The position numbers and the translations under genes are program-made. The notes below the pieces were generated by a model that was not told where the DNA came from, did not search any database, and saw nothing but the letters and a program-made list of their open reading frames with translations. Shown here piece by piece: positions 30,225 to 64,000 of a stretch of DNA of 64,000 nucleotides. Each line of letters opens with the position of its first letter. Positions within the stretch are counted from its first letter, which is position 1. Source of the stretch: Takakia lepidozioides (lineage: Eukaryota; Plantae; Bryophyta). The stretch covers positions 38,378,001-38,442,000 of the forward strand of contig CM060732.1 in assembly GCA_030704615.1 (NCBI GenBank), written 5' to 3'.

Positions 30225-33200
30225 CACTAGAAGAGAAACCGGCTTTTTCCACGGCTCTGCCATCTCACACCTGGCACATTCCACGGCTTTTATCATGGGT
30301 CTGTAGACTGAGCCAAGGTGTGGGTCTAAATATGCCCTAACTGTGGGGTGTCTCACATGTGGTCCACACCCCAGGCAAGAACGGTGTGAAAACAGCCATG
30401 ACCGTGGCAGGGGTTGGCTTAGTTTACATGGCATGTTACACACCTGTGTGAAATGGGACCATACAATTATTTCCACTGATTGTGGTGTATGGGTTTAGTT
30501 AGTACTCCGCTGCAAATGGAATAAATCATGAACTTCAGAAATCTGCCCTCGGAAAGACGAAGAGGTGGTCGTCGCATTTTGCAATGTAAACCGAATGCAA
30601 TGCAAGCTTAACAGTCCTCATATTATGATTGAAGGGAGTCAAATTAAGTGTGACCATATCAGTGCAGGGACATAAATATGAATCATTCAACATTGTAAAA
30701 TGAAAACAAGGTAGAGCTAGTACATGGTACCTTTAAACTTGCTGCAGAGTGCAAAAGGTTTAAAGATCAAAGTGCAAAAGGTTTAAATTTTTTTGCAAAA
30801 GTTGCTTGTAGGGTTTGCAAAAGGTTAATTTTTTTAAAAAGTTGCCCATCCCGGTAGCTGTGAACAGAGGGTTGGGACTTAGAGCGCGCGAGCAGGAGGG
30901 AGAGAGAGAGGGCTGGGACTTAGAGCAGCGAGTGGGAGGGAGGGCAAACATGGGAGGCCCGCAGTTGGAGCAACCTTCGCATCTAAAAAGCAAGCAACCC
31001 GACAAACGCTAGGGTATGTGTGCGAGGACTAGGTGTCGGCTGAGAGCTCGCCGTTCTGGGGAGAGTCAGCTTGGTCTTAGGTCGAGGACAATGTGGTGAG
31101 GGCACCTTCTTCTTCGACCTATTTCAGCCTGTTTTGCGCTCTCATCAAACTCAGCCTTAAATTTGTAGCACGGAGCAGAGCTGGCATGAGTTTTTAAAGA
31201 TTATTCACGATGGGACAACCGCAATCGCAAGGTGTGGCTTTTTCTTAATGTACGATGTAAAGAAGTTTGTCCATCCTGCAAATGTCCTGTTAGTACCGTG
31301 CTTTGGTATCCTTCCTGATGTTTACAAGGTTCTTGGAAGAGTCAGCTTGGTCTTAGCAGGCCGTGCTTCAATTTCTGCCCGTTCAGCTGCACCATGGTGG
31401 TTCTCATAGACCAATCAGACATTACTTGACTACAGACACAAGCAGCACACACAAGAGGTTCTCTTAGGTTCATGGTCAGTCAAATCCTCCATGGGTCATG
31501 ACACAAGGTCGAGGACAATGTGGTGAGGGCACCTTCTTCTTTGACCTATTTCAGCCTGTTTTTCCCTCCCATCAGACTCGGTTGATAGAACTAGGCAGCG
31601 GTAACGGAGGCACCTTCTTCAATACATTTCAGCCTGTTTTCCTTGTTATCAGAGTTGTCCCTAATTTTCATGTTGAATTCTGCAAGTTAGCTCTTGGTGG
31701 ATCTATGGTACAGGGGGTTTTGAAGTGATTTGACATGTTACTGCCTATGTAGCAACAGGAAAGTATTGAAAACAGATAACAGAAACTAAGAGAAGCTCTG
31801 GAATGAAGGAGCAGGGATAGAGTGTGGGTTGAGATTCATCGAAGCGGGTCGGATTTCAAGCTCCAAATCACCTATGATTCCCTGTGGAAGGATAGCTACA
31901 AGAAACCTGCATGGGTAGATGGTCAATTGGAAGCCGCGGCAGCAACGGCACAAATGATCAAATCAGGCACCTCAACCATGACCACAACTCTGGAAGAGGA
32001 TCAAGAGAGGGAGTCCACAGTGCCTGTTCTGGCACTCCTGGGCATGTCAAGATGCTTTGTGAGGTAGGTAGACTGAATGAGGCTCTACAGACTTTAAACC
32101 AATGAGGAATTTCAGCAAATTTAGATAAGTATGTCTGTCTCTTGCTTAAGTGCATCAAGAGGAAAGGTTTGGAAGCTGGAAAGCAGGTGCACACTCACAT
32201 TATGATCCAAAGTGGACTCACGCCAACTGTTTTTCTCCTCAACACCCTTGTCAACCTGTATGTTAAGTGCGGGAGCATCATGATGCTCACCAAGTTTTCA
32301 ACAGAATGCCTCAACGATATTTGATCTCATGGAATACAATGCTGGAAGGATTTACCACGCGTTGGTGTTTGTGTTTGCAAAAGCGTGTGCAAGCGTGGGA
32401 CCTCTGGAAAATGGGGGAAAGGGGGCACCTTCTTCAATAGCACAACGGCTACAAGTGGGTAGATGGTCAATTGGAAACAGCAGCGGCAGCAACACATTGA
32501 TAGAACAAGGCACTAGCTAGGATCGATAGCTACAAGAAACCTGCATGGGTAGATGGTCAACTAAAGGCAGCAGCTGCAATGTCACAGTTGATAAAATCAA
32601 GCACCTCAACCAAGACCACAGCCTCTGGAAGAGGATCAAGAGAGGGAGTCCACAAGCCTCTTCTGGCACTTCTGGGCATGTGAAGATGTCTTGTGAGGCA
32701 CGCAGACTGAAAGAGGCTCTACAGACTTTAATTTAAACCAAAGAGGCATTTCAGCAGATTCAGAAACGCATGTCTGTCTCTTGCATAAGTGCATCAAGGT
32801 GAAAGCCTGGAAGTTGGAAAGCAGGTGCACACTCACATTATCCAAAGTGGATTCACGCCAAATGTTTTTCTCCTCCACACCCTTGTCAACATGCATGTTA
32901 AGTGCGGGAGCATCATGGATGCTCACCAAGTGTTCAACAGAATGCCTCAACGATATTTGATCACGTGGACTATCATGTTGGCAGGATTTACCAAGCATGG
33001 GTGTGGTAGGAATGTTTTGGAGACCTATGAGCAAATGATGGGGGAAGCGATTTAGCCCAACCACATCACGTTTGTAGCGTTTGTAGTGTGCGTGCAAGCC
33101 TGGCAGCCCTGGAAAAAGGCAAAGAGGTGCATGGTGACATCGTGAGATCTGGAATCCTACCAGATGTCATCCTGAATACTGCCCTGGTGGACATGTATGC

Positions 33201-36200
33201 CAAATGTGGGTGCATCGAGGATGCAAAAGGGAGTGTTCGACAATATGGCTGAACGAAATGTGGTGTCGTGGAGTGCGATGCTCGCAGGGTATGCACAGTA
33301 GGGGTGCGGGATGGAGGCTTTGGAGACCTATGAGCAAATGATGGGGGAAGGGGTGAAGCCCAACCACATCACATTTGTGTGCGTTTGCAGTGCGTGTGCA
33401 AGCCTGACAGCGTTGCAAAAGGGCATAGAGGTGCATGGCGACATCATCAGAGCTAGAATCGTACCAGATGTGATCCTGAATAATACCCTGGTGGACATGT
33501 ATGCCAAATGTGGGAGCATCGAGCATGCAAAGGGAGTGTTCAACAATATGGCTGAACGAGATGTGGTGTTGTGGAGTGCGATGATTGCAGGATATGCACA
33601 GCAAGGGCGTGGGATGGAGGTTTTGGAGACCTATGAGCAAATGATCTGCGAAGGGGTGAAGCCCAACCATGTCACATTTGTGTGCATTTGCAAGCCTGGC
33701 AGCCCTGGAAATGGGCAAAGAGGTCCATGGTGACATTGTCAAAGCTGGAATTGTACCCAATGTCATTATGAACTCTGCCCTGGTGGACATGTAGGCCAAA
33801 TGTGGGAGCATTGAGGATGCGAAGGGATTGTTCAACACTATGGCTGAACGAGATGTGGTGTCGTGGAACACGATGCTTGCAGGGTATGCACAACAGGGGC
33901 GCGAGATGGAGGCCTTGGAGACGTAAGAGAAATTGATGGGGGAAGGGGTGAAGTGCAACCACATCACGTTTTGTATGCGTTCGCAATGCTTGTGCAAGCC
34001 TAGCAGCCCTGGAAAAGGGCAAAGAGGTGCATGGTGACATTGCCAAAGCTGGAATTGTACCAGATGTGATTCTGAACAATACCCTCGTGGACTTTTATGC
34101 CAAATGTGGGTCCATCGAGGATGCAAAGGCAGTGTTTGATAAGATGGCTGCACATTCACGGGATGGAGGCTTTGGATACCTATGAGCAAATGATGGGCAA
34201 AGGGCGACAATTTGGAGGTTGTGATGGCTGCATATGTGTGGGGAAAAGAAGCGAAGGGATAGAGTGTTTCAGGCACAAGATTACTTATGATTCCCTGTGA
34301 ATCAATAGCTACTAGCAACCTGCATGGGTAGATGGTCAACTGGAAGCTGCAGCAGCAACAACACAATAGATAAATTCAAGCACTGCTAATGAAGGCACCT
34401 TCTTCAACACATTTCACCTTGTTTTTCCCTCTTATCAGAATCGGCCCTGAATTTTCATGTTGAATTCTGCAAGGTGCTGGTTGAGTAAACCTTTGATAGT
34501 TTGGAGTGACTGACTGATATTGCCAATGTGACAACAGGAAAGTATCCAGAAACAGGTAACAGAGACAAGGAGACCAGGAGATGTGGAATGAATACTTTTC
34601 TGACCCCAGTCAATGGTGGGACAATCGAGGCAAAAGGTAAATGCCTGGATTACAGAGAGTAGCAAATGCAATTGAGCATAGGAACTAATGTGATAAGTTG
34701 AGTTGGGTGTTTCCTAGAACAATTCTAGGCTTTCATTGTCAGTTGCTAGCAGCACAGAAAGGGTGAATGCATGATTTGTGCAGAGGCATGGATAGCTGAA
34801 GGAGCAGGGATAGAGTGTGGGTCCAGATTCATCTAAGAGGGCCAGATTTCAAGCTCCACATTACCTGTGATTCCCTGTGGATCAATAGCTACCAGAAACC
34901 TCCATGGGTAGATGGTCAACTGGCAGCAGCGGCACAATTGATATAATCAGGCACTGCTAATGAAAGCATCTTCTTCATTACATTTCCCTCTTATTAGAAT
35001 CGGCCCTAACTTTCCATGTTGAATTCTGCAAGTTAGCTGGTTGAGTGAATCTAGTTTGGAGTGGCTTTGACATGATACTGCCAATGTGACAACATGAAAG
35101 TATCCAGAATTAGGTAATAGAGACGAGGACAAGCTGTGGAATGAATACTTTTCTGACCCCAGTCAATGGTGGGACAATCGAGGCAAGAAGGTGAATGCTT
35201 GTTGGATTATAGAGAGTAGCAGATGCAATTGAGCATATGAACTAGTGTGATAAGTTGAGTTGGGTGTTTCCTAGAACAAATCTAGGCTGTCATCGTCAGC
35301 TGCTAGCAGCAAGGCAAGGATGTATGCTTGATTTGTGCAGAGGCATGGATAGCTGAAGGAGCAGGGATATAGTGTGGGTCCAGACTCAGGAGTTTCCGCC
35401 TTGGCAGGTTGCTCAGTGACCTTCCCTGATAGCTTTGGAGTATACTGAGTGTCTCACAATGCAATGTTGGTTGGTGCATCTTATGCAGGAACTTGGAAAA
35501 CAAACAAATGTCGTTTTTTGGAGCTTTAGGCTGAACCTCTGTGCTGGGCTGCATTGTGCAACCTGGCCTCTGCCTCAGACTTAGACTCAGATCTTTGATC
35601 TCAGACTCAGACTCAGACTCAGACTCTTTGATGTCAGACTGAAGTGTATTTGGGCACTGAAGCACTTATGTAATTTTGAATTATCGTTGCATCTGCTCAT
35701 TCTATCTGTTTGTTCTGGCCATGCTTAGTCAGTTCTTCATGTCATGAGCAGGTTGTTGCTGTGATGCTTTGGAATTGTGTTTAGGTGTCTTTAGATCGTG
35801 ATACTGACCACAAGCAACCTACGGTGAACTGTGGTATCCTCCACATTTATGTGGAATGTCCTACAACGTAGGTCATAGTATATTTCACACCCGCTATGGT
35901 CTTCTCCATAGTTATGTGGAATGACCTACAGTATAGGCAGTAAAATACTCCACACCCACACCAAGAGTTGCTCCAAAATACGCCACGTGTTGCCCTGACA
36001 AAAATACACGTGGTGCCCATACCGTTGCCCAGATGTCGTCAAGCCATGGTGACAGGCTGTCGCATAATTTTCCCGTAGGTGTGGACAAGTCCACACCCTT
36101 TGTACGTCTAGGATCCACGTGGCGGTGTTCGCCAAAGCACACATCGCCCGTGGAAAAAACCATTCACCCCGTGAAAAAAGCCACCTCTGGATTCAGCCAC

Positions 36201-56102: not shown

Positions 56103-57953
56103 GACTTCACATCCACAAGGGCCTGAATTGTGGGATGTCACTCCCTTATTTCATTGTAAAATAATAATAACAATAATAATAATACTTTTCTCCAATTTTG
56201 TCTGTTGTATAGATTTTAATGTTTTCCCCCTTCTTTTAAATTTAAAAAAATAAAATAAACAGTGAGTGGCAGGCTGCACTCTCGGTTTACAGAGAATCTC
56301 TCCCACTCTTGTTTGGAAGTCTCAAATAGTTGCCCAGAATGCAGAATATGCTCCGCGGGATGCGGTGGGGATGCGGTATGAGCACATGCAATGGGCTGGG
56401 GTGATGCCTGACAAGGCCACTCAACTTGAAAGAAAGAAAAAAGTAGGCAATACTGCTCGGTTTGGAGGAACAAGTTGTGAGACCCAGGAAACATGAAGAG
56501 GGGGCTTGTAGTAAAGAAAAACTTTACTCCTCCCATAGGAAGTGTAATTTATGGTGTTGCGGCCATAACCAGAGCAGGCCCTAACGTACCATCAAAGGAA
56601 CAAGGAACATGCACCATGAGCACCATGATCCCAGATCTCTATTAGCTAAGACGACACCCCTGAGTGACGGAATTACTTTCCAAAAAGTACCAGACACCTC
56701 CCAAAAAACAGAGAAAAAAACGGAACAGAGTCACCAGTCGCAAACAACCAGGAATGCCAACTGTACTTGATGAAGGACCACAAGAAGAATGACAAAGAGA
56801 ATTGAAACATCCTTCAATGCTATCGTGTCACGAAGCACTATGACATGAAAAGTACGCTTCTCCTGCCTGCATCAAATCCCAACGAAGTCAACAATGAGGT
56901 GAGTACTCCAAGGAGACACAGGACCTGCTTAGAGGAAAAGTCTCATATGTAGCCAATGGTGAAAAGGAGTGAAGCAAAAGAAACTGGTTCATCCCGTGCA
57001 TGTTTGCAACACAGTGATGCCACATACTAGGTACCCATGATGAACAAAATAGCAGCCATACATAAACTCAAGGCCTCCACAGATAATTTAAAGGTGACTC
57101 TACATCCGTCGCAAAATGCGATCTTGAGCTCACAAGAGAGACACTCCAACGCCAAGAGATCACTACCTCCACAGGCCAGTTCCAATATGCCCTTTCTTGC
57201 CACAACTATAAAGACTACACCAGCTGATAGAAGAAACAGGCAAACCAACTGGTCAAACTCTTGTTACCAAAACCCTCATCCTTATGTCCCTACCTAGAGA
57301 ATGCAATGCAAACACCCAACACCATCTCTGGTCCAACCTCTGCATGGCCTCAGCGCCGGGCCTTGCTTTCACCGCCAATACAAGATCTAGCTATCACGCT
57401 ACTATCCAGCGATAAAAAGGAACCAGTGCAAAATGACAATGGCAACACAAATTCCCACCCCAAACCCCACACTCCCACTGCCCCATACAACAGGCCCCGC
57501 CCTCACTGTCACTGCCGATCAGTGCTCAGGCACATGCTGCAAACGAGAAGCATGGCAAAAAGCACCCTCACCTAACAGAAGTGTTTGCTGAGCTTCTCAG
57601 TCACTGGACTCTGCACAGCTGAAAGAGTGGCCATTCTGCACACACAAAATGTGAAAGCCAACACAACTTCAACTCCAGGACTATATGCCAGGGGTTTGCC
57701 AACACTTTCATGAGTCTCAGCTGTAGACCAATTCTAGACCTTGCGATTCCAAGGGCCCCTAAGTTCTAAGGTTTCCCATGACTTCAGCTATATTCACATT
57801 TGAAATTGTGATCATCACCATTGGATTTAACTACTTGATGTTGCGCACTCACTTCATTCCACTCCAACCTTTTCCTGCAAGACTAGTTAGGAGTCATTAA
57901 TTTGTCACCCTCACCTTAAAGCAAGGCCCTATCTGTCATGCATGTTCCTTGCT

Positions 57954-60227
57954 TCACCAGTAATCCCCACAAGAACAGACTCCATCTTGGACATGGTGAA
58001 AGCGGGTCGCATCTCTCACGACAACTGCTCGCCCAGCAATCTTCGAGATGAATTTGGTGAAGGTGTGGCAGTCACCACACACCCGAAGATTCTTCACAAT
58101 ACGGATAGATGTCCCAGGGGGGGTGCTGATGAGCCCAAAAGCAATGGCCAGCTTCTCACTATGGTGGCCAAGAGAATGTTCCTTTTGCTCCTCCTCCACA
58201 TCATGCAATACAAAGCACGTGTCAGGCACATATCCTGCTTCCTTCATCTGCCCAGCCACTCGCTTCAACTGAGAATGGATCTCCTTGATTTGTGGATGCA
58301 ATTTATCTTCTACAAGAAAAGAATGCAACTCATTGTTGACCTCAATGCAGCTGCACCCTGGCTCCTTTCGAACACCTCTCCCCTTCATCATTTTCCTCAC
58401 CTTTGATTTGTCATCCCACCTGCCAGCCGCAGCATAGATGTTCGACAGCAGCACATAACTGGAAGGGTCCTGTGGATTCTTTCTATTAAGGCATTTTGCC
58501 GCATGCTCTGCTAGCTCCACGTCACTGTGCATTCTGCAAGCACCAAGCAAGGCACCCCACACTCCAGCATCAGGTTCAATTGGCATTTTGTTGATGAGGT
58601 TCTCTGCCTCATCCAATCGCCCTGCACGGCCAAGAAGGTCTACCATGCAGCCAAAGTGCTCCACTGTAGGAGTGAGGCCATGATCTTTAGTCATGGAATC
58701 ACAGTAGTGATAGCCTTCATCCACTAGGCCCACATGGCTGCATGCAGCGAGGACAGATATAAACGTGATACCATTTGGTTTCAAGCCTTGCTGTTGCATT
58801 TGTTCAAATAGTTTCAGGGCCTCCCTACCACATCCATGCTGGGCACATCCTGCAATCATGGCGTTCCAAGAGACCACATCTCGATTAGCCATACTGTCAA
58901 ACACTTGACGTGCATCCTTCATGCTGCCACACTTGGCGTACATGTCCACAAGGGTATTATCCAAATTAATATATGACATAATTCCAACTTTGATGATGTC
59001 GGCATGGACCTCTTTCCCCTTTTCCAGAGCTCCTAGGCTGGCACACGCATTGAGGGTGCCAATGAATGTGACCCTGTTGGGCTTTACCCCTTCCCATTGC
59101 ATTTGTTCATAGATCTTGACAGCCTCCCTACCATACCCATGGTGAGCATATCCTGCAATCATCGCACTCCATGAGACAACGTCTCGCATGTCCATATTAT
59201 CAAACACTTGACGTGCATCCTTCATGCTCCCACACTTAGCATACATGTCAACAAGGGAATTCACCAAGTTGATATGTGATGCAATTCCAGCTTTGGTGAT
59301 GGTAGCATGGACCTCCTTGCCCTTTTCCAGGGCTTCTAGCGTGGCACATGCATTGAGAATGCAAATAAATGTGACCATATTGGGCGCCACTCCTTCCCCT
59401 TGCATTTGCTCATACATCTCAAAAGCCTCTGCACCACATCCAAGCTGAGAATAGCCTGCTATCATGATGTTCCATGAGACAACATCCGGTTTACCCATCG
59501 CATTGAACAGTTTATGTGCATCCTTCATGCTCCCGCATTTTGCATACATAGTGATGAGGGTATTCTCCAAATTAATGTATGGTGGAATCCCAGCTTTAAT
59601 GATGTCAGCATGGACCTCTCTGCCTTTTTCCAAGGCTTCTAGGCTGGCACATGCATTGAGGATGCAAATGAATGTGACCCTGTCAGGAGTTACCCCTTCT
59701 TGTCGCATTTGCTCATAGATCTTCAGAACTTCCCTACCACTCCCATGCCTAGTGTACCCTGCCATCATAATGGCCCATGTAAACAAATTTCGTTCAGGCA
59801 TTTTGTCAAATACTTGGCGTGCATCAACTACACTCCCACACTTGGCATACATGTTGACAAGAGTGTTTAGTAGAAAAATGTCTGGCTTGAATCCACTTTG
59901 GATCATGTGGGTGTGCACCTTCTTTCCCTCTGCTAGGTCTTTCATCTTGATACACTCCTGAAAGAGACAGGCATACGAGTTGGAGTCTGCCCGAGTGCCT
60001 TGGTGGTTCAAAATGTGCAGCGCCTCGTTCAATGGTCCTGCTTTACATAGTATCCTCACATCCTCATATCCATCAGAAGAGTTATTGTTGACACCATCCC
60101 CCCATCCTGCTGTGGAGGTACTACTCCCAGAAGTCCAATGTTTGACAGAAACCTGTGCCTGATTCAGCCCTGCCATCCTGCAGAGTTCAAAACTCTTAGT
60201 TGCAAACTTTTCACTGAAAGCTGGCAT
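57954..60227 (-). CDS. PLS-class PPR protein with E/E+ and DYW deaminase domain (organellar C-to-U RNA editing factor)
   Basis: Intact 757-aa ORF with P-L-S repeats, PG box (EPGCSCIEV), HSEKLA, CGDCH and terminal CSCGDYW. Confidence 0.96.
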   Translation of the reverse strand: MPAFSEKFATKSFELCRMAGLNQAQVSVKHWTSGSSTSTAGWGDGVNNNSSDGYEDVRILCKAGPLNEALHILNHQGTRADSNSYACLFQECIKMKDLAEGKKVHTHMIQSGFKPDIFLLNTLVNMYAKCGSVVDARQVFDKMPERNLFTWAIMMAGYTRHGSGREVLKIYEQMRQEGVTPDRVTFICILNACASLEALEKGREVHADIIKAGIPPYINLENTLITMYAKCGSMKDAHKLFNAMGKPDVVSWNIMIAGYSQLGCGAEAFEMYEQMQGEGVAPNMVTFICILNACATLEALEKGKEVHATITKAGIASHINLVNSLVDMYAKCGSMKDARQVFDNMDMRDVVSWSAMIAGYAHHGYGREAVKIYEQMQWEGVKPNRVTFIGTLNACASLGALEKGKEVHADIIKVGIMSYINLDNTLVDMYAKCGSMKDARQVFDSMANRDVVSWNAMIAGCAQHGCGREALKLFEQMQQQGLKPNGITFISVLAACSHVGLVDEGYHYCDSMTKDHGLTPTVEHFGCMVDLLGRAGRLDEAENLINKMPIEPDAGVWGALLGACRMHSDVELAEHAAKCLNRKNPQDPSSYVLLSNIYAAAGRWDDKSKVRKMMKGRGVRKEPGCSCIEVNNELHSFLVEDKLHPQIKEIHSQLKRVAGQMKEAGYVPDTCFVLHDVEEEQKEHSLGHHSEKLAIAFGLISTPPGTSIRIVKNLRVCGDCHTFTKFISKIAGRAVVVRDATRFHHVQDGVCSCGDYW

Positions 60228-60459
60228 TGATACATTTCAAAGCAAAGCTTCAGGGTACAATCATCCCTTCAAGCCCACAGGCTTCTTATAACTAGAGTTA
60301 ACCAATTTAGTGCTGTCATCTACTTGGAGGAAGAAACTGTTACAATTCCATCTCTTTCGCTTAAACCCTTCAATCCTCATAAAAACAATACCTGCAGTAT
60401 TCTCTGCATGGTGCTCCATTGTGTACTTTGACATTACAACCATCACCAGATTGTGCTCG

Positions 60460-60789
60460 CCCTTGCATCATGGCAGCAAGATCTGTTTTCACCCAAGGAG
60501 GGTTTGCCCAACTTTCCATCCAAATAACCTCCTTTGTGCACATATGTTAGAAGTATGGTGATCTTGGGCTTCTCTGTGGAATCAAACAATGAGCAGCTGA
60601 GCTTCAGCTGTGGTTCAAATGTAACGTGCTATGACCACCAAAACTCCAGCAAACAGACAAAGCAACCTTATATATCCAGAACGAGGATAGCTTCACCTTG
60701 TCAAACCTCTTGTCCCACCACTGTGAAGGATCTGAGAAGAACTCCTGCCGCCGCTGCTCTATGGTCTGGGCTTGACCTGCGTGCAAGAC
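60460..60789 (-). pseudogene. Two upstream exons encoding an OSB-type PDF motif, 5' of the PPR-DYW ORF; premature stop
   Basis: ~60789-60697 QEFFSDPSQWWDKRFDK|GT; 60573-~60460 AG|RSPRSPYF*HMCTKEVIWMESWANPPWVKTDL (TAA at 60549-47). Confidence 0.7.
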
Positions 60790-63267
60790 CTCCAAGAGCA
60801 TGAGAACTTCACCAACTTCCAAATTGCTACACCAAATTTGATAGCATTTCTGCAAATTCCAATGTGCTGTCTCTCGACCTCATTCACACAGGAAAGATAC
60901 AGGGCATACAACATATCACAGATTTTGCACCACATACCACAGAAGCTCGTAGCGACAAAGCTCCCAATACAAGCCAGGCAGTGGATAATAAGTCTGTTAT
61001 CCATCCACCATCCCATTGTGCTCCACATTGTGTCACGGGAGCTGGAGCTTCACAAGCCTGAAGTCTGCTAATATTGAAGGCTTTCTGAGAAAACCAGAAG
61101 AGGGCAGCCGAGCGGCCCCACATTTCCAACCACGTCATCTGCAACCACCACAATGCCACAATCATCGCTTCAAACAACAGGCAACGACTTCGTACAAACT
61201 TCAGTGCAACTGTGAATTTAGTGCAGGGGAAAACTACACAGCTGTAATTTTCCTACGTGTGCCCAAGGTCTCCTATAGTTATATTGTTCAGCAAGAGGTC
61301 ACCTTCACCAAGAAGGCGTGCATTCAGTACGTGGAAGGACGACGTACCCGATATCAGACTCTTTACTGAGCCTTGCCTGAAGAGAAACTCGGGTTGAAGG
61401 AAATGCGCCTCTCTCGAGAAGGGTGGATTCACGCTCAGTCAGTCTATGAGTACAGGCGTAAGAATCGTATGCCTTTCTTTCAGCTTTCACTGAAAAACTT
61501 GAAGCGCTTAAGAGACAATGCTGTTTTGCACCACCAATATGCCGTGGGCATTTGAAAAGACAAGGTTCAAACGTGTTTTCGAGTTAGAAGAAAGACTCTA
61601 CAATTGCACGTCTCTTCTGATTTCCTCGAGGCTCGGTACGCGTCACGGCCATCATCGAAAAGGTGGTGAACCTGCATCGCGAAGTTGCATACACACATCA
61701 GTCCATGGCCTATCCCGTCAATCTTGTGCAGGATGTGAAGCATTCCGCTCCTTCACCGCATGCAGAAGTCCTGCGCACTGAAGAGAGCACACGTTTGATT
61801 TCCACTTCAAGTGTGTCACTAAACCGTGCTCTGCGCGCGCAGGGAGAGGCCATAGCCAAAGCCCTGCCTTCTTCTTGTTATGAGAAGGCGGCAGTCCTGA
61901 CATCAGGCAGCAGAGGATGGGGCACGCTGTGCAGGGGATATCAGCGTCCAGTTTCAGGATTTCGAGCTTGAGAACCTTGCGAGTGATGGCTATGACGCGC
62001 CCCCATCCTCCTGCGACAACGAGTACAGGTATATAGACATGTACTCTTTGCGTTGTGTTTTTGGGCCTTTGAAAGGTGTGTATGGGAGATGCAGGCTTCT
62101 TTTAGTACTTCCTCCCACTTCTTCCGTTCCTGGCCCACAGCTGGCCCGTTAATCTGCTCTTTGGCTATCAGTGATGGCTATGACATTCTCCCGGCCTCCA
62201 GGGAAACCGAAAGACTTGGAACTTTTTCCTATTCTGTGGGATCCTCAGTTGTGTGCGTCGTAGTGATGCAGGCTTCATTTTGTTTATTTAGTCATCCGAG
62301 TAGAAACCACACCCACTTCAGTGGAACAAGTTTACAGGAACGTGACTGTAACGGACAACCTGGTCCTCCTTAGATCGGCTCCTTGCGTGATTAGATAAAA
62401 CTGATGATGAAAGTCTCTATGTCAGGCACATGCTCCTCTCAGCATTCAAACTGGCACGGATGTGATATATGTGGATGTGATGACCCTGCCAGAGATAGAG
62501 ATTGATTGATACAGTAATATACATTAGGGCAATTAGGATCCGCTGAAGATCTGTATTTAGTTGTGTTGGCATGCAGGCAGAGCATAGACTGGCTTCGGCT
62601 CGAGTGCATGTCAGAGTCTTTGCATTGTTGAGATAGAAGGTCTGAGAGGCTATCTCGTTTTTCAGTTTCTCAAATGGAAAGGACATTTTTCCTTCCCTGA
62701 TTGAAGCTTCTAATATGTTTTTGTAGACTGAGCATGATGAGTTGCTCTGAATTATGACAGTTGGATCTTGTCTGTCCCACCTGCCATGAGTGGTGCTTGC
62801 TGTAGGATCAGTTATCTGCTAACCAAAACAGTATTGAAGTTTGTATGGGCAGCATGTTGAAGATCACCACACTCAAAGACATTAGCGATTTGGATTGATT
62901 GTTGGTCAATCAAGCAGAGATAGCTACCATTAGACAGTGGGATGGTGGATGGATATTAGAGGAATGCTCTAGTTCTGGCCAAGACTAATCGTCCATTGAA
63001 GTTTCAAGACAGGTGGGGCCATGCTGGTGGGATGGCAGATTATTGTCGAAGGACAGAGTTGGGTGAAACAATAGCTGAGGAGGGATGTGAGTGTTGTTCA
63101 CAATCAACCTGGCTTGAAGAGTGGCCTCCCCCAGGACAAGCTTGTTCCGTATGTTCTCAAACTTTGTTGTGCATGACGCAGAGCAAGATGACAGACTTGC
63201 AGAAATGTTACAAATAGCACTCACCATTAAAGGCTGCAGCATTTACAAATTTCTCATGCTCTTGCAG

Positions 63268-63700
63268 CTCTTGCTCACAGATCAAGCAATGAGCATAGAA
63301 CCGCCCTGGCAGGAGTTCATCTCAGATCCTTCACGCTGGCGGGACTACAGGTCTGACAAGGTAATGGTATCTTCATTTGGGACACAAGAGCAACTGAAGC
63401 TCACATGCTGATATTTTGCGGACTGGATGTAATCCAATGTACTGGCTAAGAATGTAAAAAAACAACAATAGTGGATCTTCCCATTGTTGTGAGCAGGTTG
63501 TTCTTCCTTGTGAGCAGGTCATGAAATTTGGCTGGTCAAGGTTGGCCCTTGTTATTTGATCACAGAGAAGTCCAAGAGCACCAGACTCCAGACATAGCTG
63601 CAAGAAGGAGGTCCACTGGATGGACAGTTGGTCAAACCCTGGGGAACATTTGCCTACACAAGGATGCCCTTTGGCTTGTGCAACGCACCCCTGACATTTC
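63268..63700 (+). CDS. PDF-motif exons of a divergently oriented paralogue (may be degenerate; likely continues past the window)
   Basis: 63268-63360 WQEFISDPSRWRDYRSDK|GT; 63566 AG|RSPRAPDSRHSCKKEVHWMDSWSNP. Same intron position as the copy at 60.7 kb. Confidence 0.6.
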
Positions 63701-64000
63701 AGAGGTGCTACCAAAATACAAGACCAATCACAACCTGGTCGTCCTTCTACTGGCAATGTTCACCATGAAGCTCAAGACCAAGAATACAACAGGTGATTCT
63801 CTAAGAATACACGGATTTCAATTTAAACATATGTAGCTCTCACAGTTTAATTCCAACATAGATAACTGCAGCAATTTTTTAACCCTTTCCAGATGTAGTA
63901 CAAGGCCTTTCATCGTGAAGAGATCTATCTTTGAAGTATCTACAAGCTTGGATATATCATGAGATTGAGTGGAAATGTGGGTACTTCAGAGTTTTGCATC

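Follow-up and report, generated by a model that had tools for sequence, protein, structure and literature searches.

Organisation of the locus

The window (the whole 64 kb stretch of Takakia lepidozioides DNA that was analysed) contains a PPR-DYW gene at about 60 kb on the minus strand, a second gene with a degenerate leader at about 63 kb on the plus strand and a transposon-like block at 30-36 kb, and all three carry halves of the PDF motif of OSB proteins. The halves were sought by a six-frame regex scan and by HMM scans. The first half, with the pattern W.E[FY]FSDPS.WWD.R..K, occurs at 34581-34636 (+), 35131-35190 (+), 60776-60697 (-) and 63281-63360 (+), and the second half, with the pattern RSPR.PDFKH..LW...NP.WV, at 31849-31944 (+), 34830-34940 (+), 60573-60392 (-) and 63566-63640 (+); neither scan, in six frames, revealed a further PDF-scoring place in the 64 kb window. 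The split motif noticed in a preliminary description of this DNA is confirmed at 60.78-60.39 kb (-), at 63.28-63.79 kb (+) and several times between 31.8 and 35.2 kb (+), and the splice sites are GT..AG throughout. In the six-frame window, the halves score 18.6-39.0 bits (E 1e-10 to 3e-4) with a profile made from PDF-PPR proteins of other species and 11.2-31.9 bits (E 1.6e-8 to 0.047) with an OSB-only profile, i.e. far beyond chance with both. Frames were worked out exon by exon via phase arithmetic, each exon being handled singly.

Exon C of the 60 kb gene (57954..60177, minus strand) encodes a PLS-type PPR array, E, E+ and a DYW deaminase domain, as judged from the ORF list, Pfam and the translation. 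The corresponding ORF (57954-60227, minus strand) is free of lesions and specifies 757 aa in which PPR, E and E+ are followed by a full DYW domain; the protein ends in GDYW and its stop codon lies at 57954-57956. Pfam matches are PPR_2 (2.4e-83, 10 stretches), PPR (1.6e-71), PPR_1 (1.3e-51), E_motif (4.6e-25), Eplus (5e-4) and DYW_deaminase (8.4e-43, over positions 1-93 of 93), and the translation contains HSE and CGDCH, i.e. the HxE and CxxCH of the DYW deaminase. The protein has all of the tandem PLS-type PPR array, the E1/E2 extension and the complete DYW domain ending in DYW, its closest homologues are annotated PPR-DYW proteins, and its layout is that of the PLS-class PPR-DYW editors such as Physcomitrium PPR56 and PPR65 and the Arabidopsis DYW proteins, in which the PPR array is likewise accompanied by E1/E2 and by a DYW domain that bears HxE and CxxCH.

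The listed start codon of this ORF, ATG 60227, falls within intron 2 (60178..60391, minus strand; 214 nt, GT..AG, placed by splice sites and a contig), which separates the PPR exon from PDF exon B and ends with the acceptor CTCTGCAG/G at 60178/60177 (-), where the slash marks the splice site. Intron 2 cuts a codon after base 2 and, by phase arithmetic, its removal leaves exon B and the PPR ORF in frame. Exon B (60392..60573, minus strand; translation, HMM) contains the second half of the PDF and a linker, and reads RSPRSPYF, a stop, HMCTKEVIWMESWANPPWVKTDLAAMM and so on. It scores 38.7 bits (E 1.5e-10, profile positions 32-66) with the PDF-PPR profile and 17.1 bits with the OSB-only profile. 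The stop that the preliminary description placed in this exon is real: TAA at 60549-60547 replaces the K of PDFKH, and the next in-frame ATG is at 60543. Intron 1 (60574..60696, minus strand; 123 nt, GT..AG, phase 0) splits the PDF motif after R..K. The degenerate first half, exon A (60697..60776, minus strand), reads QAQTIEQRRQEFFSDPSQWWDKRFDK and scores 35.3 bits with the PDF-PPR and 20.2 bits with the OSB-only profile; the start ATG of its paralogues is gone (in the paralogues, the loose ends have the consensus ATG AGC AAA GAA CAG CTC TGG) and the first conserved W has become R.

The 63 kb gene begins with an upstream exon that is probably non-coding (63009..63148, plus strand; identical, with 0 differences, to positions 117-256 of contig record 2 of run X1, donor CC/GTATGT). 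As the PDF frame of this exon is closed by a stop, the start codon would be the ATG of the following exon A (63281..63360, plus strand), with which the first PDF half opens. This half, QAMSIEPPWQEFISDPSRWRDYRSDK, has 23.8 bits (PDF-PPR) and 20.6 bits (OSB-only), and its WWDNR has decayed to WRDYR. In exon B (63566..63792, plus strand; 18.6 bits with the PDF-PPR profile) PDFKH is degraded to PDSRH; the exon reads RSPRAPDSRHSCKKEVHWMDSWSNP and then runs into divergent sequence with an in-frame stop, where, from about 63640 on and in another frame, a reverse-transcriptase-like piece is found (MPFGLCNAPLTFQR, RVT_1 E 0.005). Its donor is CAG/GTGATT at 63792/63793. The 63 kb leader is in all a degenerate one with a retrotransposon fragment inside. 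Upstream of the 60 kb and 63 kb PDF exons, tblastn with the N-terminal parts of 75 PDF-PPR proteins revealed no presequence exon; bearing on the same point, a stop codon ends the reading frame of the 60 kb leader, and the upstream exon of the 63 kb gene carries its in-frame stop.

The block at 30-36 kb contains PDF and PPR pieces on the plus strand in several arrangements. A second PDF half (SDFKLQITYDSLWKDSYKKPAWVDGQL) at 31849..31944 scores 21.5 bits (PDF-PPR) and 21.1 bits (OSB-only), resembles 34797-34954 at the DNA level, and runs without an intron, and with frameshifts, into the N-terminus of a PPR sequence. The PPR repeat array that is found there (31938..34204) is broken, gives 35-67% identity over matched stretches in tblastn with the 757 aa protein, and sits inside a rearranged, transposon-like surrounding. 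Downstream of the array, the best-preserved split PDF copy, with exon A, intron and exon B, occupies 34581..34940: exon A at 34581-34636 (MWNEYFSDPSQWWDNRGK) has lost 1 nt at the donor and scores 33.5 bits (PDF-PPR) and 27.6 bits (OSB-only), and exon B at 34830-34940 (RGPDFKLHITCDSLWINSYQKPPWVDGQL) scores 35.6 and 31.0 bits, respectively. A tandem duplicate of exon A follows at 35131..35190 (KLWNEYFSDPSQWWDNRGKK/GT; 39.0 bits PDF-PPR, 31.9 bits OSB-only) and its second half is lost; the DNA of 34424-34831 and 34983-35388 is 87.5% identical. The copies between 31.8 and 35.2 kb are shuffled fragments. The earlier statement that a PDF precedes the PPR repeats within a Pack-CACTA element holds for the one second half at 31.85-31.94 kb, while the complete split copies (34.6 and 35.15 kb) follow the array.

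Splicing of the PDF exons

Two public runs, X1 and X2, which are probably RNA (this is a guess), were available as assembled contigs. In record 3 of X1, positions 60573-60391 (0 differences) are followed directly by 60176-59839, so that exon B is joined to the PPR exon. The PPR side differs at 12 of 338 nt, and the record may be a chimera or stem from a close paralogue or allele. With this reservation about the 12 PPR-side differences and the probable RNA nature of the runs, the splicing of PDF exons to PPR coding sequence that had been predicted is borne out by the contigs, in which exon B (60573-60392) runs in frame into the PPR exon from 60177 on. At the 63 kb gene, the joint 63358->63564 (GT..AG, cut +2) is present in 2 contigs of X1 and 1 of X2, and record 2 of X1 contains 63564-63792 with 0 differences and then a sequence that resembles the PPR region 59778-59919 to about 85%. 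A divergent PDF copy is indeed present at 63.3 kb, as had been described, but it does not stand apart from PPR sequence, since the contigs show its exons spliced onward into PPR-like sequence past the end of the window. Putative transcripts that join PDF and PPR are found in contigs of runs that are probably RNA, and in these the PDF exons and the PPR sequence would lie on one mRNA and, at the 60 kb gene, in one frame, with phases that fit the PPR frame.

An intact PDF-PPR copy is absent from the window; each local PDF copy has decayed, i.e. the PDF module is decaying in every copy that the window contains, and the local data consequently give no sign that the module is needed. This makes the state of the 60 kb gene a question in its own right, as the gene could be a decaying pseudogene and not a functional editor from which the PDF and the presequence were lost. 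The leader has suffered three disabling changes (loss of the ATG, W to R, and the TAA), the spliced form lacks ATG 60227 so that its start would have to be the internal ATG at 60543, with exons ahead of it and no presequence, and the neighbouring copies are all broken. The 757 aa PPR-E-DYW ORF, on the other hand, is lesion-free with a full DYW domain and is covered by contigs, and its chance preservation would be unlikely unless the decay of the leader is very recent. We consider the pseudogene reading quite possible, at slightly less than an even chance. The locus is a small natural experiment, with an intact editor ORF and a decayed PDF leader.

Relation of the motif to OSB proteins

The motif was previously assigned to the PDF of OSB proteins by its appearance, and profile comparisons show that it is a true homologue. 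The OSB-only profile, to which 73 OSB-architecture proteins contributed 138 domains, recognises the halves in the window, within the range given above, as well as the PPR-linked PDFs of other species (median 77 bits). In the reciprocal direction, a profile from PPR-linked PDFs matched 1219 representative proteins, of which the best were proteins with an SSB domain and then 2-5 PDFs, and retrieved SSB+PDF proteins at E 1e-40 to 1e-60. In the alignment, PPR-linked PDFs retain all conserved residues of the OSB PDF. Both groups share the PDF of about 55 residues, W..FF..P..WWDNR..K..P.PDFKHK.T.EALW....P.WV, and both are nuclear-encoded, OSB proteins with presequences and PDF-PPR proteins with putative ones. 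The rest is different. OSB proteins have an SSB-like OB fold ahead of C-terminal PDFs and are without PPR, whereas in PDF-PPR proteins the PDFs are N-terminal, the OB fold is missing and a PPR-E-DYW editor comes next. No SSB match is present in the 757 aa protein or in the PDF-PPR protein P0134, which therefore lack the OSB-family architecture; PDF-PPR proteins are not OSB proteins. A further difference is seen at the gene level, as the PDFs of a Sinapis alba OSB gene (L002) have no intron and the PDF of the PPR genes has one; in this OSB gene, the one examined, the shared PDF intron is absent.

When six pieces of the window were compared with Pfam, no model matched the PDF even with a threshold of E 1, and the PDF profile found chance matches only among PDB sequences (E 0.8 or worse). 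The AlphaFold models reach a confident pLDDT of 88 when the PDF is taken alone and of 93 when PPR repeats are included, and predict a small alpha-beta-beta-alpha unit. A dsRBD-like order of alpha-beta-beta-beta-alpha is unsupported by Foldseek and VIA-align fold searches. No solved fold was matched by the model in these searches, with E no better than 3.5 in Foldseek and Z no higher than 2.9 in VIA-align, so the structure hints at no function.

PDF-PPR proteins in other plants

The notion of a family of PDF-PPR fusions can be upheld: it is a real and recurrent architecture, and PDF and PPR occur together in 96 fetched proteins from seven species of Sphagnum, the jungermanniid liverwort Calypogeia fissa, the lycophyte Diphasiastrum complanatum and the fern Adiantum. 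The annotated PPR(-DYW) proteins of these plants have one to three PDF motifs each, and when a PDF was used as query all 60 of the 60 long proteins were PPR proteins, mostly with DYW. In most of the 96, 40-110 residues stand ahead of the PDF, and the end of the PDF and the start of the PPRs are a few residues apart at most; in moss and liverwort proteins no linker separates it from the 5'-proximal PPR. The 51 homologues from Ginkgo and the 11 from Cryptomeria, whose gene models may miss 5' exons, contained no PDF, and a search with residues 1-120 of the PPR protein found no homologues.

The PDF intron is also shared. At the 60 kb and 63 kb loci a phase-0 intron follows R..K (GAC AAG/GT...AG/AGA), and in a PDF-PPR gene of Sphagnum magellanicum (L001) the intron (GAG AAG/GT...AG/GTA AAT) has the same position and phase. 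In the tree, PPR-linked PDFs cluster apart from those of OSB proteins, and a single clade is not rejected (p-AU 0.52). The shared intron and this clustering argue for a common origin of PPR-linked PDFs. One could object that the co-occurrence is debris, i.e. that CACTA-like shuffling of the kind seen at 30-36 kb has scattered pieces of OSB genes beside PPR genes without any functional fusion, and the stretch at 31.8-35.2 kb is indeed pieced together from duplicated parts of PDF and PPR sequence. This reading is already contradicted by the annotated PDF-PPR layout in four distant plant lineages, by the conservation of both the intron and the PDF-PPR junction, by the separate grouping of PPR-linked and OSB PDFs and by the splicing in contigs of runs that are probably RNA, and we give it hardly any weight.

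No literature linking PDF and PPR was found in our search, outside which lay Zaegel 2006 (the original OSB paper) and Gutmann 2020. A review of P. patens PPR proteins names only RRM, LAGLIDADG, SMR, NYN, CBS and SAP as extra domains, the PDF not being among them. Recent OSB surveys demanded an OB fold together with the PDF (PMC13393729) and would for this reason have missed PDF-PPR fusions. The architecture is apparently conserved yet undescribed.

Discussion

We think it rather probable that the decaying copies in the window belong to a conserved class of PDF-PLS-DYW editors of non-seed land plants in which the PDF is a clamp for single-stranded nucleic acid. Such a class would consist of a presequence, one to three PDFs, a PPR array, E and DYW, and its PDF would be interrupted in the gene by an old phase-0 intron that follows R..K. 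A PPR tract lies on its RNA site with the N-terminus towards the 5' end. As the PDF ends where the first PPR begins, its hold on the RNA would fall immediately 5' to the stretch covered by the PPRs. There it may act as a sequence-independent grip on single-stranded nucleic acid that raises the affinity or the residence time of the editor. The conserved aromatic (W, F) and basic (R, K, H) residues of the PDF are consistent with this role.

The same residues bear on a different proposal, namely that the PDF of PPR proteins does not bind nucleic acid and is instead a protein-protein or folding element that might cap the PPR solenoid at its N-terminus, mediate oligomerisation or the docking of a partner, or direct sorting within the organelle. 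The PDF directly abuts the first PPR helix and is modelled at high confidence together with the repeats, and AtOSB2 is reported to be a tetramer (PMC6963530). But a conserved surface rich in aromatic and basic residues is typical for nucleic-acid binding, and the PDF motif of AtOSB1 alone is reported to suffice for binding ssDNA (reviewed in PMC6963530 and PMC4166229), so we hold a non-binding PDF to be quite improbable.

The PDF might, alternatively, bind organellar ssDNA and thereby place the editor at the nucleoid, where editing would be co-transcriptional; the targets envisaged are the non-template strand of transcription bubbles, R-loops and replication intermediates, and in the extreme case ssDNA would be exposed to the DYW deaminase. 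The PDF is the ssDNA-binding element of OSB1, the PPR-linked PDFs keep all its conserved residues and score as highly with the OSB-only profile as stated above, and Arabidopsis OSB1 and OSB2 are reported to favour ssDNA over dsDNA or RNA (PMC4166229), a preference that a DNA tether fits better than an RNA clamp. Against this, the linker-free position on the 5'-proximal PPR in moss and liverwort would put the PDF on the same strand as the RNA read by the PPR tract, and there is no sign of DNA deamination by DYW domains. Nothing in the present analysis favours the tethering to nucleoids or R-loops, or the aiming of the deaminase at ssDNA, that had been suggested in the preliminary description, and we find the tether unlikely. 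The more specific picture, in which a putative hold on organellar ssDNA (transcription bubbles or R-loops) couples editing to transcription at the nucleoid, or in which the PDF plays the part of MORF/RIP in cis, or, at the extreme, in which DYW reaches ssDNA, is highly speculative and we assign it a low probability.

Returning to the clamp, it is instructive to compare PDF-PPR proteins with other PPR systems. The described layout of PPR-DYW proteins is transit peptide, PPR, E and DYW, and PDF-PPR proteins add to this an N-terminal PDF. The nearest parallels in design are maize PPR4, with its N-terminal RRM, and the PPR-SMR proteins, in which a general RNA- or DNA-binding module is likewise placed on a sequence-specific PPR tract (PMC9459714); these, however, are P-class proteins with RRM or SMR, while PDF-PPR proteins are PLS-DYW editors with a PDF and are found in other taxa. 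The second parallel is functional. The MORF/RIP factors of seed plants are separate proteins that raise the RNA affinity of PLS-type PPR tracts by binding the PPR repeats. Their fold is unrelated to that of the PDF and they act in trans, whereas the PDF is fused in cis, and the PDF may be a functional analogue of MORF/RIP. The taxa with PDF-PPR proteins and the seed plants with MORF look complementary, on small samples (0/62 gymnosperm homologues) and with gene models that may miss 5' exons. At the same time, two observations suggest that the module is dispensable: the PPR-DYW ORF is intact although its leader is dead, and the seed-plant homologues sampled lack a PDF.

In plant organelles, PPR-DYW proteins carry out C-to-U editing as complete machines, and they are under development as programmable RNA editors. 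Our results show that the PDF motif is used outside OSB proteins as well. Sphagnum, a jungermanniid liverwort, a lycopod and a fern together have dozens of editors with a conserved module at the 5'-proximal end of the PPR tract, and 0 of the 62 gymnosperm homologues have it, which makes the module a candidate for a missing affinity helper. Where the editors of bryophytes, lycophytes and ferns work without the MORF of seed plants, the PDF is a concrete candidate for this part.

The PDF motif in the window

The preliminary description had reported a split motif, and both of its halves were recovered by regular expressions over all six frames and by HMM scans of the 64-kb window. The first half (exon A; W.E[FY]FSDPS.WWD.R..K) was found at 34581-34636 and 35131-35190 on the + strand, at 60776-60697 on the - strand and at 63281-63360 on the + strand, and the second half (exon B; RSPR.PDFKH..LW...NP.WV) at 31849-31944 (+), 34830-34940 (+), 60573-60392 (-) and 63566-63640 (+). 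These scans gave no further scoring half anywhere in the window.

As no Pfam model detects the PDF motif, we built our own profiles. Used as a query, the 757 aa protein encoded by the 60 kb gene gave 120 PPR-DYW homologues, about 25 of them with the full motif N-terminally. Profile A1, made from 20 motif-bearing N-terminal regions of PPR-DYW homologues, scored the window halves at 18.6-39.0 bits and matched 1219 proteins when 1.84 billion representatives were scanned exhaustively with HMMER. Most of the top matches are 250-560 aa long and carry two to five motifs beyond residue ~200, and the tested ones have a Pfam SSB domain N-terminal to the motifs (P0149, 4.4e-13; P0171 from Ceratopteris, 3.1e-14; P0131, 1.2e-15), i.e. 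the architecture of OSB proteins (PMC6963530, PMC4166229). Scoring against an OSB PDF profile had been named beforehand as a test, and an OSB-only profile (138 motifs from 73 OSB-architecture proteins) indeed gave 11.2-31.9 bits on the window halves and a median of 77 bits on the PPR-linked motifs of other species. Both profiles thus identify it as a PDF motif, in support of the preliminary description.

According to reviews, PDF occurs in green plants only; P0123, a protein of 730 aa with nine PDF motifs in tandem, bears the name of the dinoflagellate Effrenium voratum, and eight members of its cluster come from two contigs, with further copies from JGI and ENA. Other odd architectures, in angiosperm annotations, are three PDFs ahead of a kinesin motor domain (P0164, Coptis chinensis), thirteen PDF repeats with a weak SSB match (P0121, Kingdonia uniflora) and a 1063 aa protein named ICR2-like with three PDFs and a weak SSB match (P0146, Striga hermonthica). 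Some of these three may be merged gene models.

The 60 kb gene

The ORF at 57954-60227 (-) encodes an intact PLS-type PPR protein of 757 aa with E, E+ and a complete DYW deaminase (Pfam PPR_2 2.4e-83, E_motif 4.6e-25, DYW_deaminase 8.4e-43 across the whole model), and HSE, CGDCH and the C-terminal GDYW are all present. Upstream on the same strand, exon A (60776-60697; acceptor CACGCAG/G, donor GACAAG/GTGAAG) is followed by a phase-0 intron 1 (60696-60574), exon B (60573-60392; acceptor CCACAG/AGA, donor TGCAG/GTATTG), intron 2 (60391-60178) and exon C (from 60177; acceptor CTCTGCAG/G). Exon B stops after codon base 2 and exon C gives base 3, so that splicing leaves exon B in the frame of the PPR ORF, the phase being derived exon by exon. 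The listed start codon of the ORF (ATG 60227) falls within intron 2.

The leader has CAG in place of the ATG found in the paralogues and in the 63 kb copy, the first conserved W of the PDF has become R, and TAA (60549-60547) replaces K of PDFKH; the stop that the preliminary description had placed in this exon is thus real. With these three lesions the PDF leader is dead. Exon B has an in-frame ATG at 60543, downstream of the TAA, which means that a product of ~791 aa is still possible from a spliced mRNA; of the PDF it would retain just the last third, and it would lack a presequence.

Transcript evidence comes from assembled contigs, which carry no strand or expression-level information, of two public runs of the same organism (X1 and X2, presumed RNA) mapped on 57900-63800. 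Contig depth is zero or nearly so in most intergenic bins, which fits an RNA origin of the runs. Contig record 3 of X1 (564 nt) follows 60573-60391 with 0 differences and then goes straight to 60176-59839, a gap that corresponds exactly to the predicted removal of intron 2. On its PPR side there are 12 differences over 338 nt, and the contig may therefore be a chimera or derive from a close paralogue or allele. No joint between exons A and B of the 60 kb gene was found among the matches listed. The PPR exon (57954-60100) matches thousands of contigs at 90% likeness (6456 in X1, with a summed depth of tens of thousands), which shows that PPR paralogues, expressed or assembled, form a very large family in this organism.

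The 63 kb gene

On the + strand, an upstream exon reaching to 63148 (donor CC/GTATGT) has a stop in the PDF frame, and the start would be the own ATG of exon A (63281-63360; QAMSIEPPWQEFISDPSRWRDYRSDK). After a phase-0 intron (63361-63565), exon B (63566-63792) encodes RSPRAPDSRHSCKKEVHWMDSWSNP and then unrelated sequence with a stop. The joint 63358->63564 (GT..AG, cut +2, i.e. 63360/63566) is seen in both X1 and X2. Contig record 2 of X1 (1113 nt) covers 63009-63148, then 78 nt of exon A (80 nt if the two ambiguous joint bases are counted) and 63564-63792, and continues into sequence that resembles the PPR region 59778-59919 at ~85%; the leader at 63 kb is therefore part of a PPR gene that lies past the window end.

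In DNA, the leader at 63 kb is 79% similar to the one at 60 kb, and this similarity ends at 63640. In another frame of exon B, the sequence from about 63640 on (63640-63792, +) encodes MPFGLCNAPLTFQR, which is reverse-transcriptase-like (RVT_1, E 0.005) and occupies the expected place of the end of the PDF motif. A fragment of a retrotransposon is thus now included in a spliced exon.

The 60 kb and 63 kb PDF-PPR genes are arranged head to head, their PDF exons A being separated by ~2.5 kb (60776-63281). Between these, public-run contigs are also found at 61320-61696, 61889-62028 and 62192-62425, and a contig joint 60749-61877 connects opposite strands; these probably represent 5' exons, either of the 63 kb gene or of paralogues.

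The 30-36 kb block

A broken, frameshifted PPR array was located by tblastn at 31938-34204 (+). A PDF second half (31849-31944, +) lies directly 5' of it with no intron between, and exon B scraps are found at 32456-32604 and 34267-34415 (+). Located 3' of the array are a complete split PDF copy (34581-34940, +) and, at 34983-35388 (+), a second, tandem copy of the 5' portion, 34424-34831 and 34983-35388 being 87.5% identical. The preliminary description had put the motif ahead of the PPR repeats, which is true of the 31.85 kb half-motif only, as the complete split copy comes after the array. In the stretch 31500-35400 (+), partial tandem duplications of the 5' part of the gene form a patchwork around the PPR array, consistent with a Pack-CACTA there.

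The PDF-PPR family across plants

With a Calypogeia PDF region as query against long proteins only, 60/60 matches were PPR proteins, most with DYW, from seven Sphagnum species, Calypogeia fissa and Diphasiastrum complanatum. In most of the 96 fetched proteins with PDF and PPR, no more than a few residues separate the end of the PDF from the point where PPR similarity begins, and in most 40-110 residues lie ahead of the PDF, space for a transit peptide. Two PDFs are frequent in lycopod members, the first being degenerate in some, and occur in one Adiantum PPR protein as well. Among the 120 best homologues of the 757 aa protein, PDF is present in Diphasiastrum (15/23), Calypogeia (3/3) and Sphagnum (1/1); the counts are 0/51 for Ginkgo, 0/11 for Cryptomeria, 0/3 for Adiantum and 0/1 for Ceratodon.

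In the Sphagnum magellanicum gene L001, a phase-0 intron separates ...LEK from VNARYPDFKHK, the same place and phase as in the 60 kb and 63 kb genes, whereas the PDFs of a Sinapis OSB gene, unlike those of L001 and the window loci, have no intron. A tree of 110 PDF domains needs three label changes for the PPR-linked ones (shuffled mean 36), 47/50 of which are on one pure side, and the AU test did not reject a single clade (p 0.52). Taken together, architecture, taxa, shared intron and tree fit one old fusion that bryophytes, lycophytes and at least one fern would have retained. The family suggested in the preliminary description is supported by the matches, the fetched proteins, the intron and the tree, and we have little doubt that the architecture is real.

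Full-text searches, with the original OSB paper outside their reach, found no paper linking PDF with PPR or DYW. The 2026 survey of OSB evolution (PMC13393729) does not mention PPR and required OB fold and PDF, which filtered PDF-PPR proteins out, and PDF is not among the six accessory domains in the 2022 moss PPR review (PMC9459714). Public databases already list the proteins, for the most part named 'hypothetical' or 'pentatricopeptide repeat'. Overall, we regard PDF-PPR as a new domain architecture of known kinds.

Fold and possible mechanism

The PDF is modelled with confidence as a small fold (helix 5-14, strands 19-21, 34-36 and 42-43, helix 52/53-60) with a pLDDT of 88 by itself and 93 with six PPR repeats, and no relative was found among solved structures. 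In profile A1 the residues W, F, W, W, D, R, K, P, D, F, H, K, L, P and W are invariant, most of them aromatic or basic. PPR tracts lie on RNA in parallel orientation, with the N-terminus toward the 5' end. A PDF joined without linker to the first PPR would sit on the strand just 5' of the recognised site, and we suggest that it may act there as a sequence-independent clamp on nucleic acid. In the main rival reading, the PDF would anchor the protein to organellar ssDNA at the nucleoid: the PDF of AtOSB1 is sufficient for ssDNA binding (PMC6963530), and OSB1 and OSB2 prefer ssDNA over dsDNA or RNA (PMC4166229). A protein-contact element, in place of a clamp or tether, is the weaker rival.

All PDF copies in the window are decayed, and the window is thus a record of the PDF-PPR family and of the loss of its module, not a working example.
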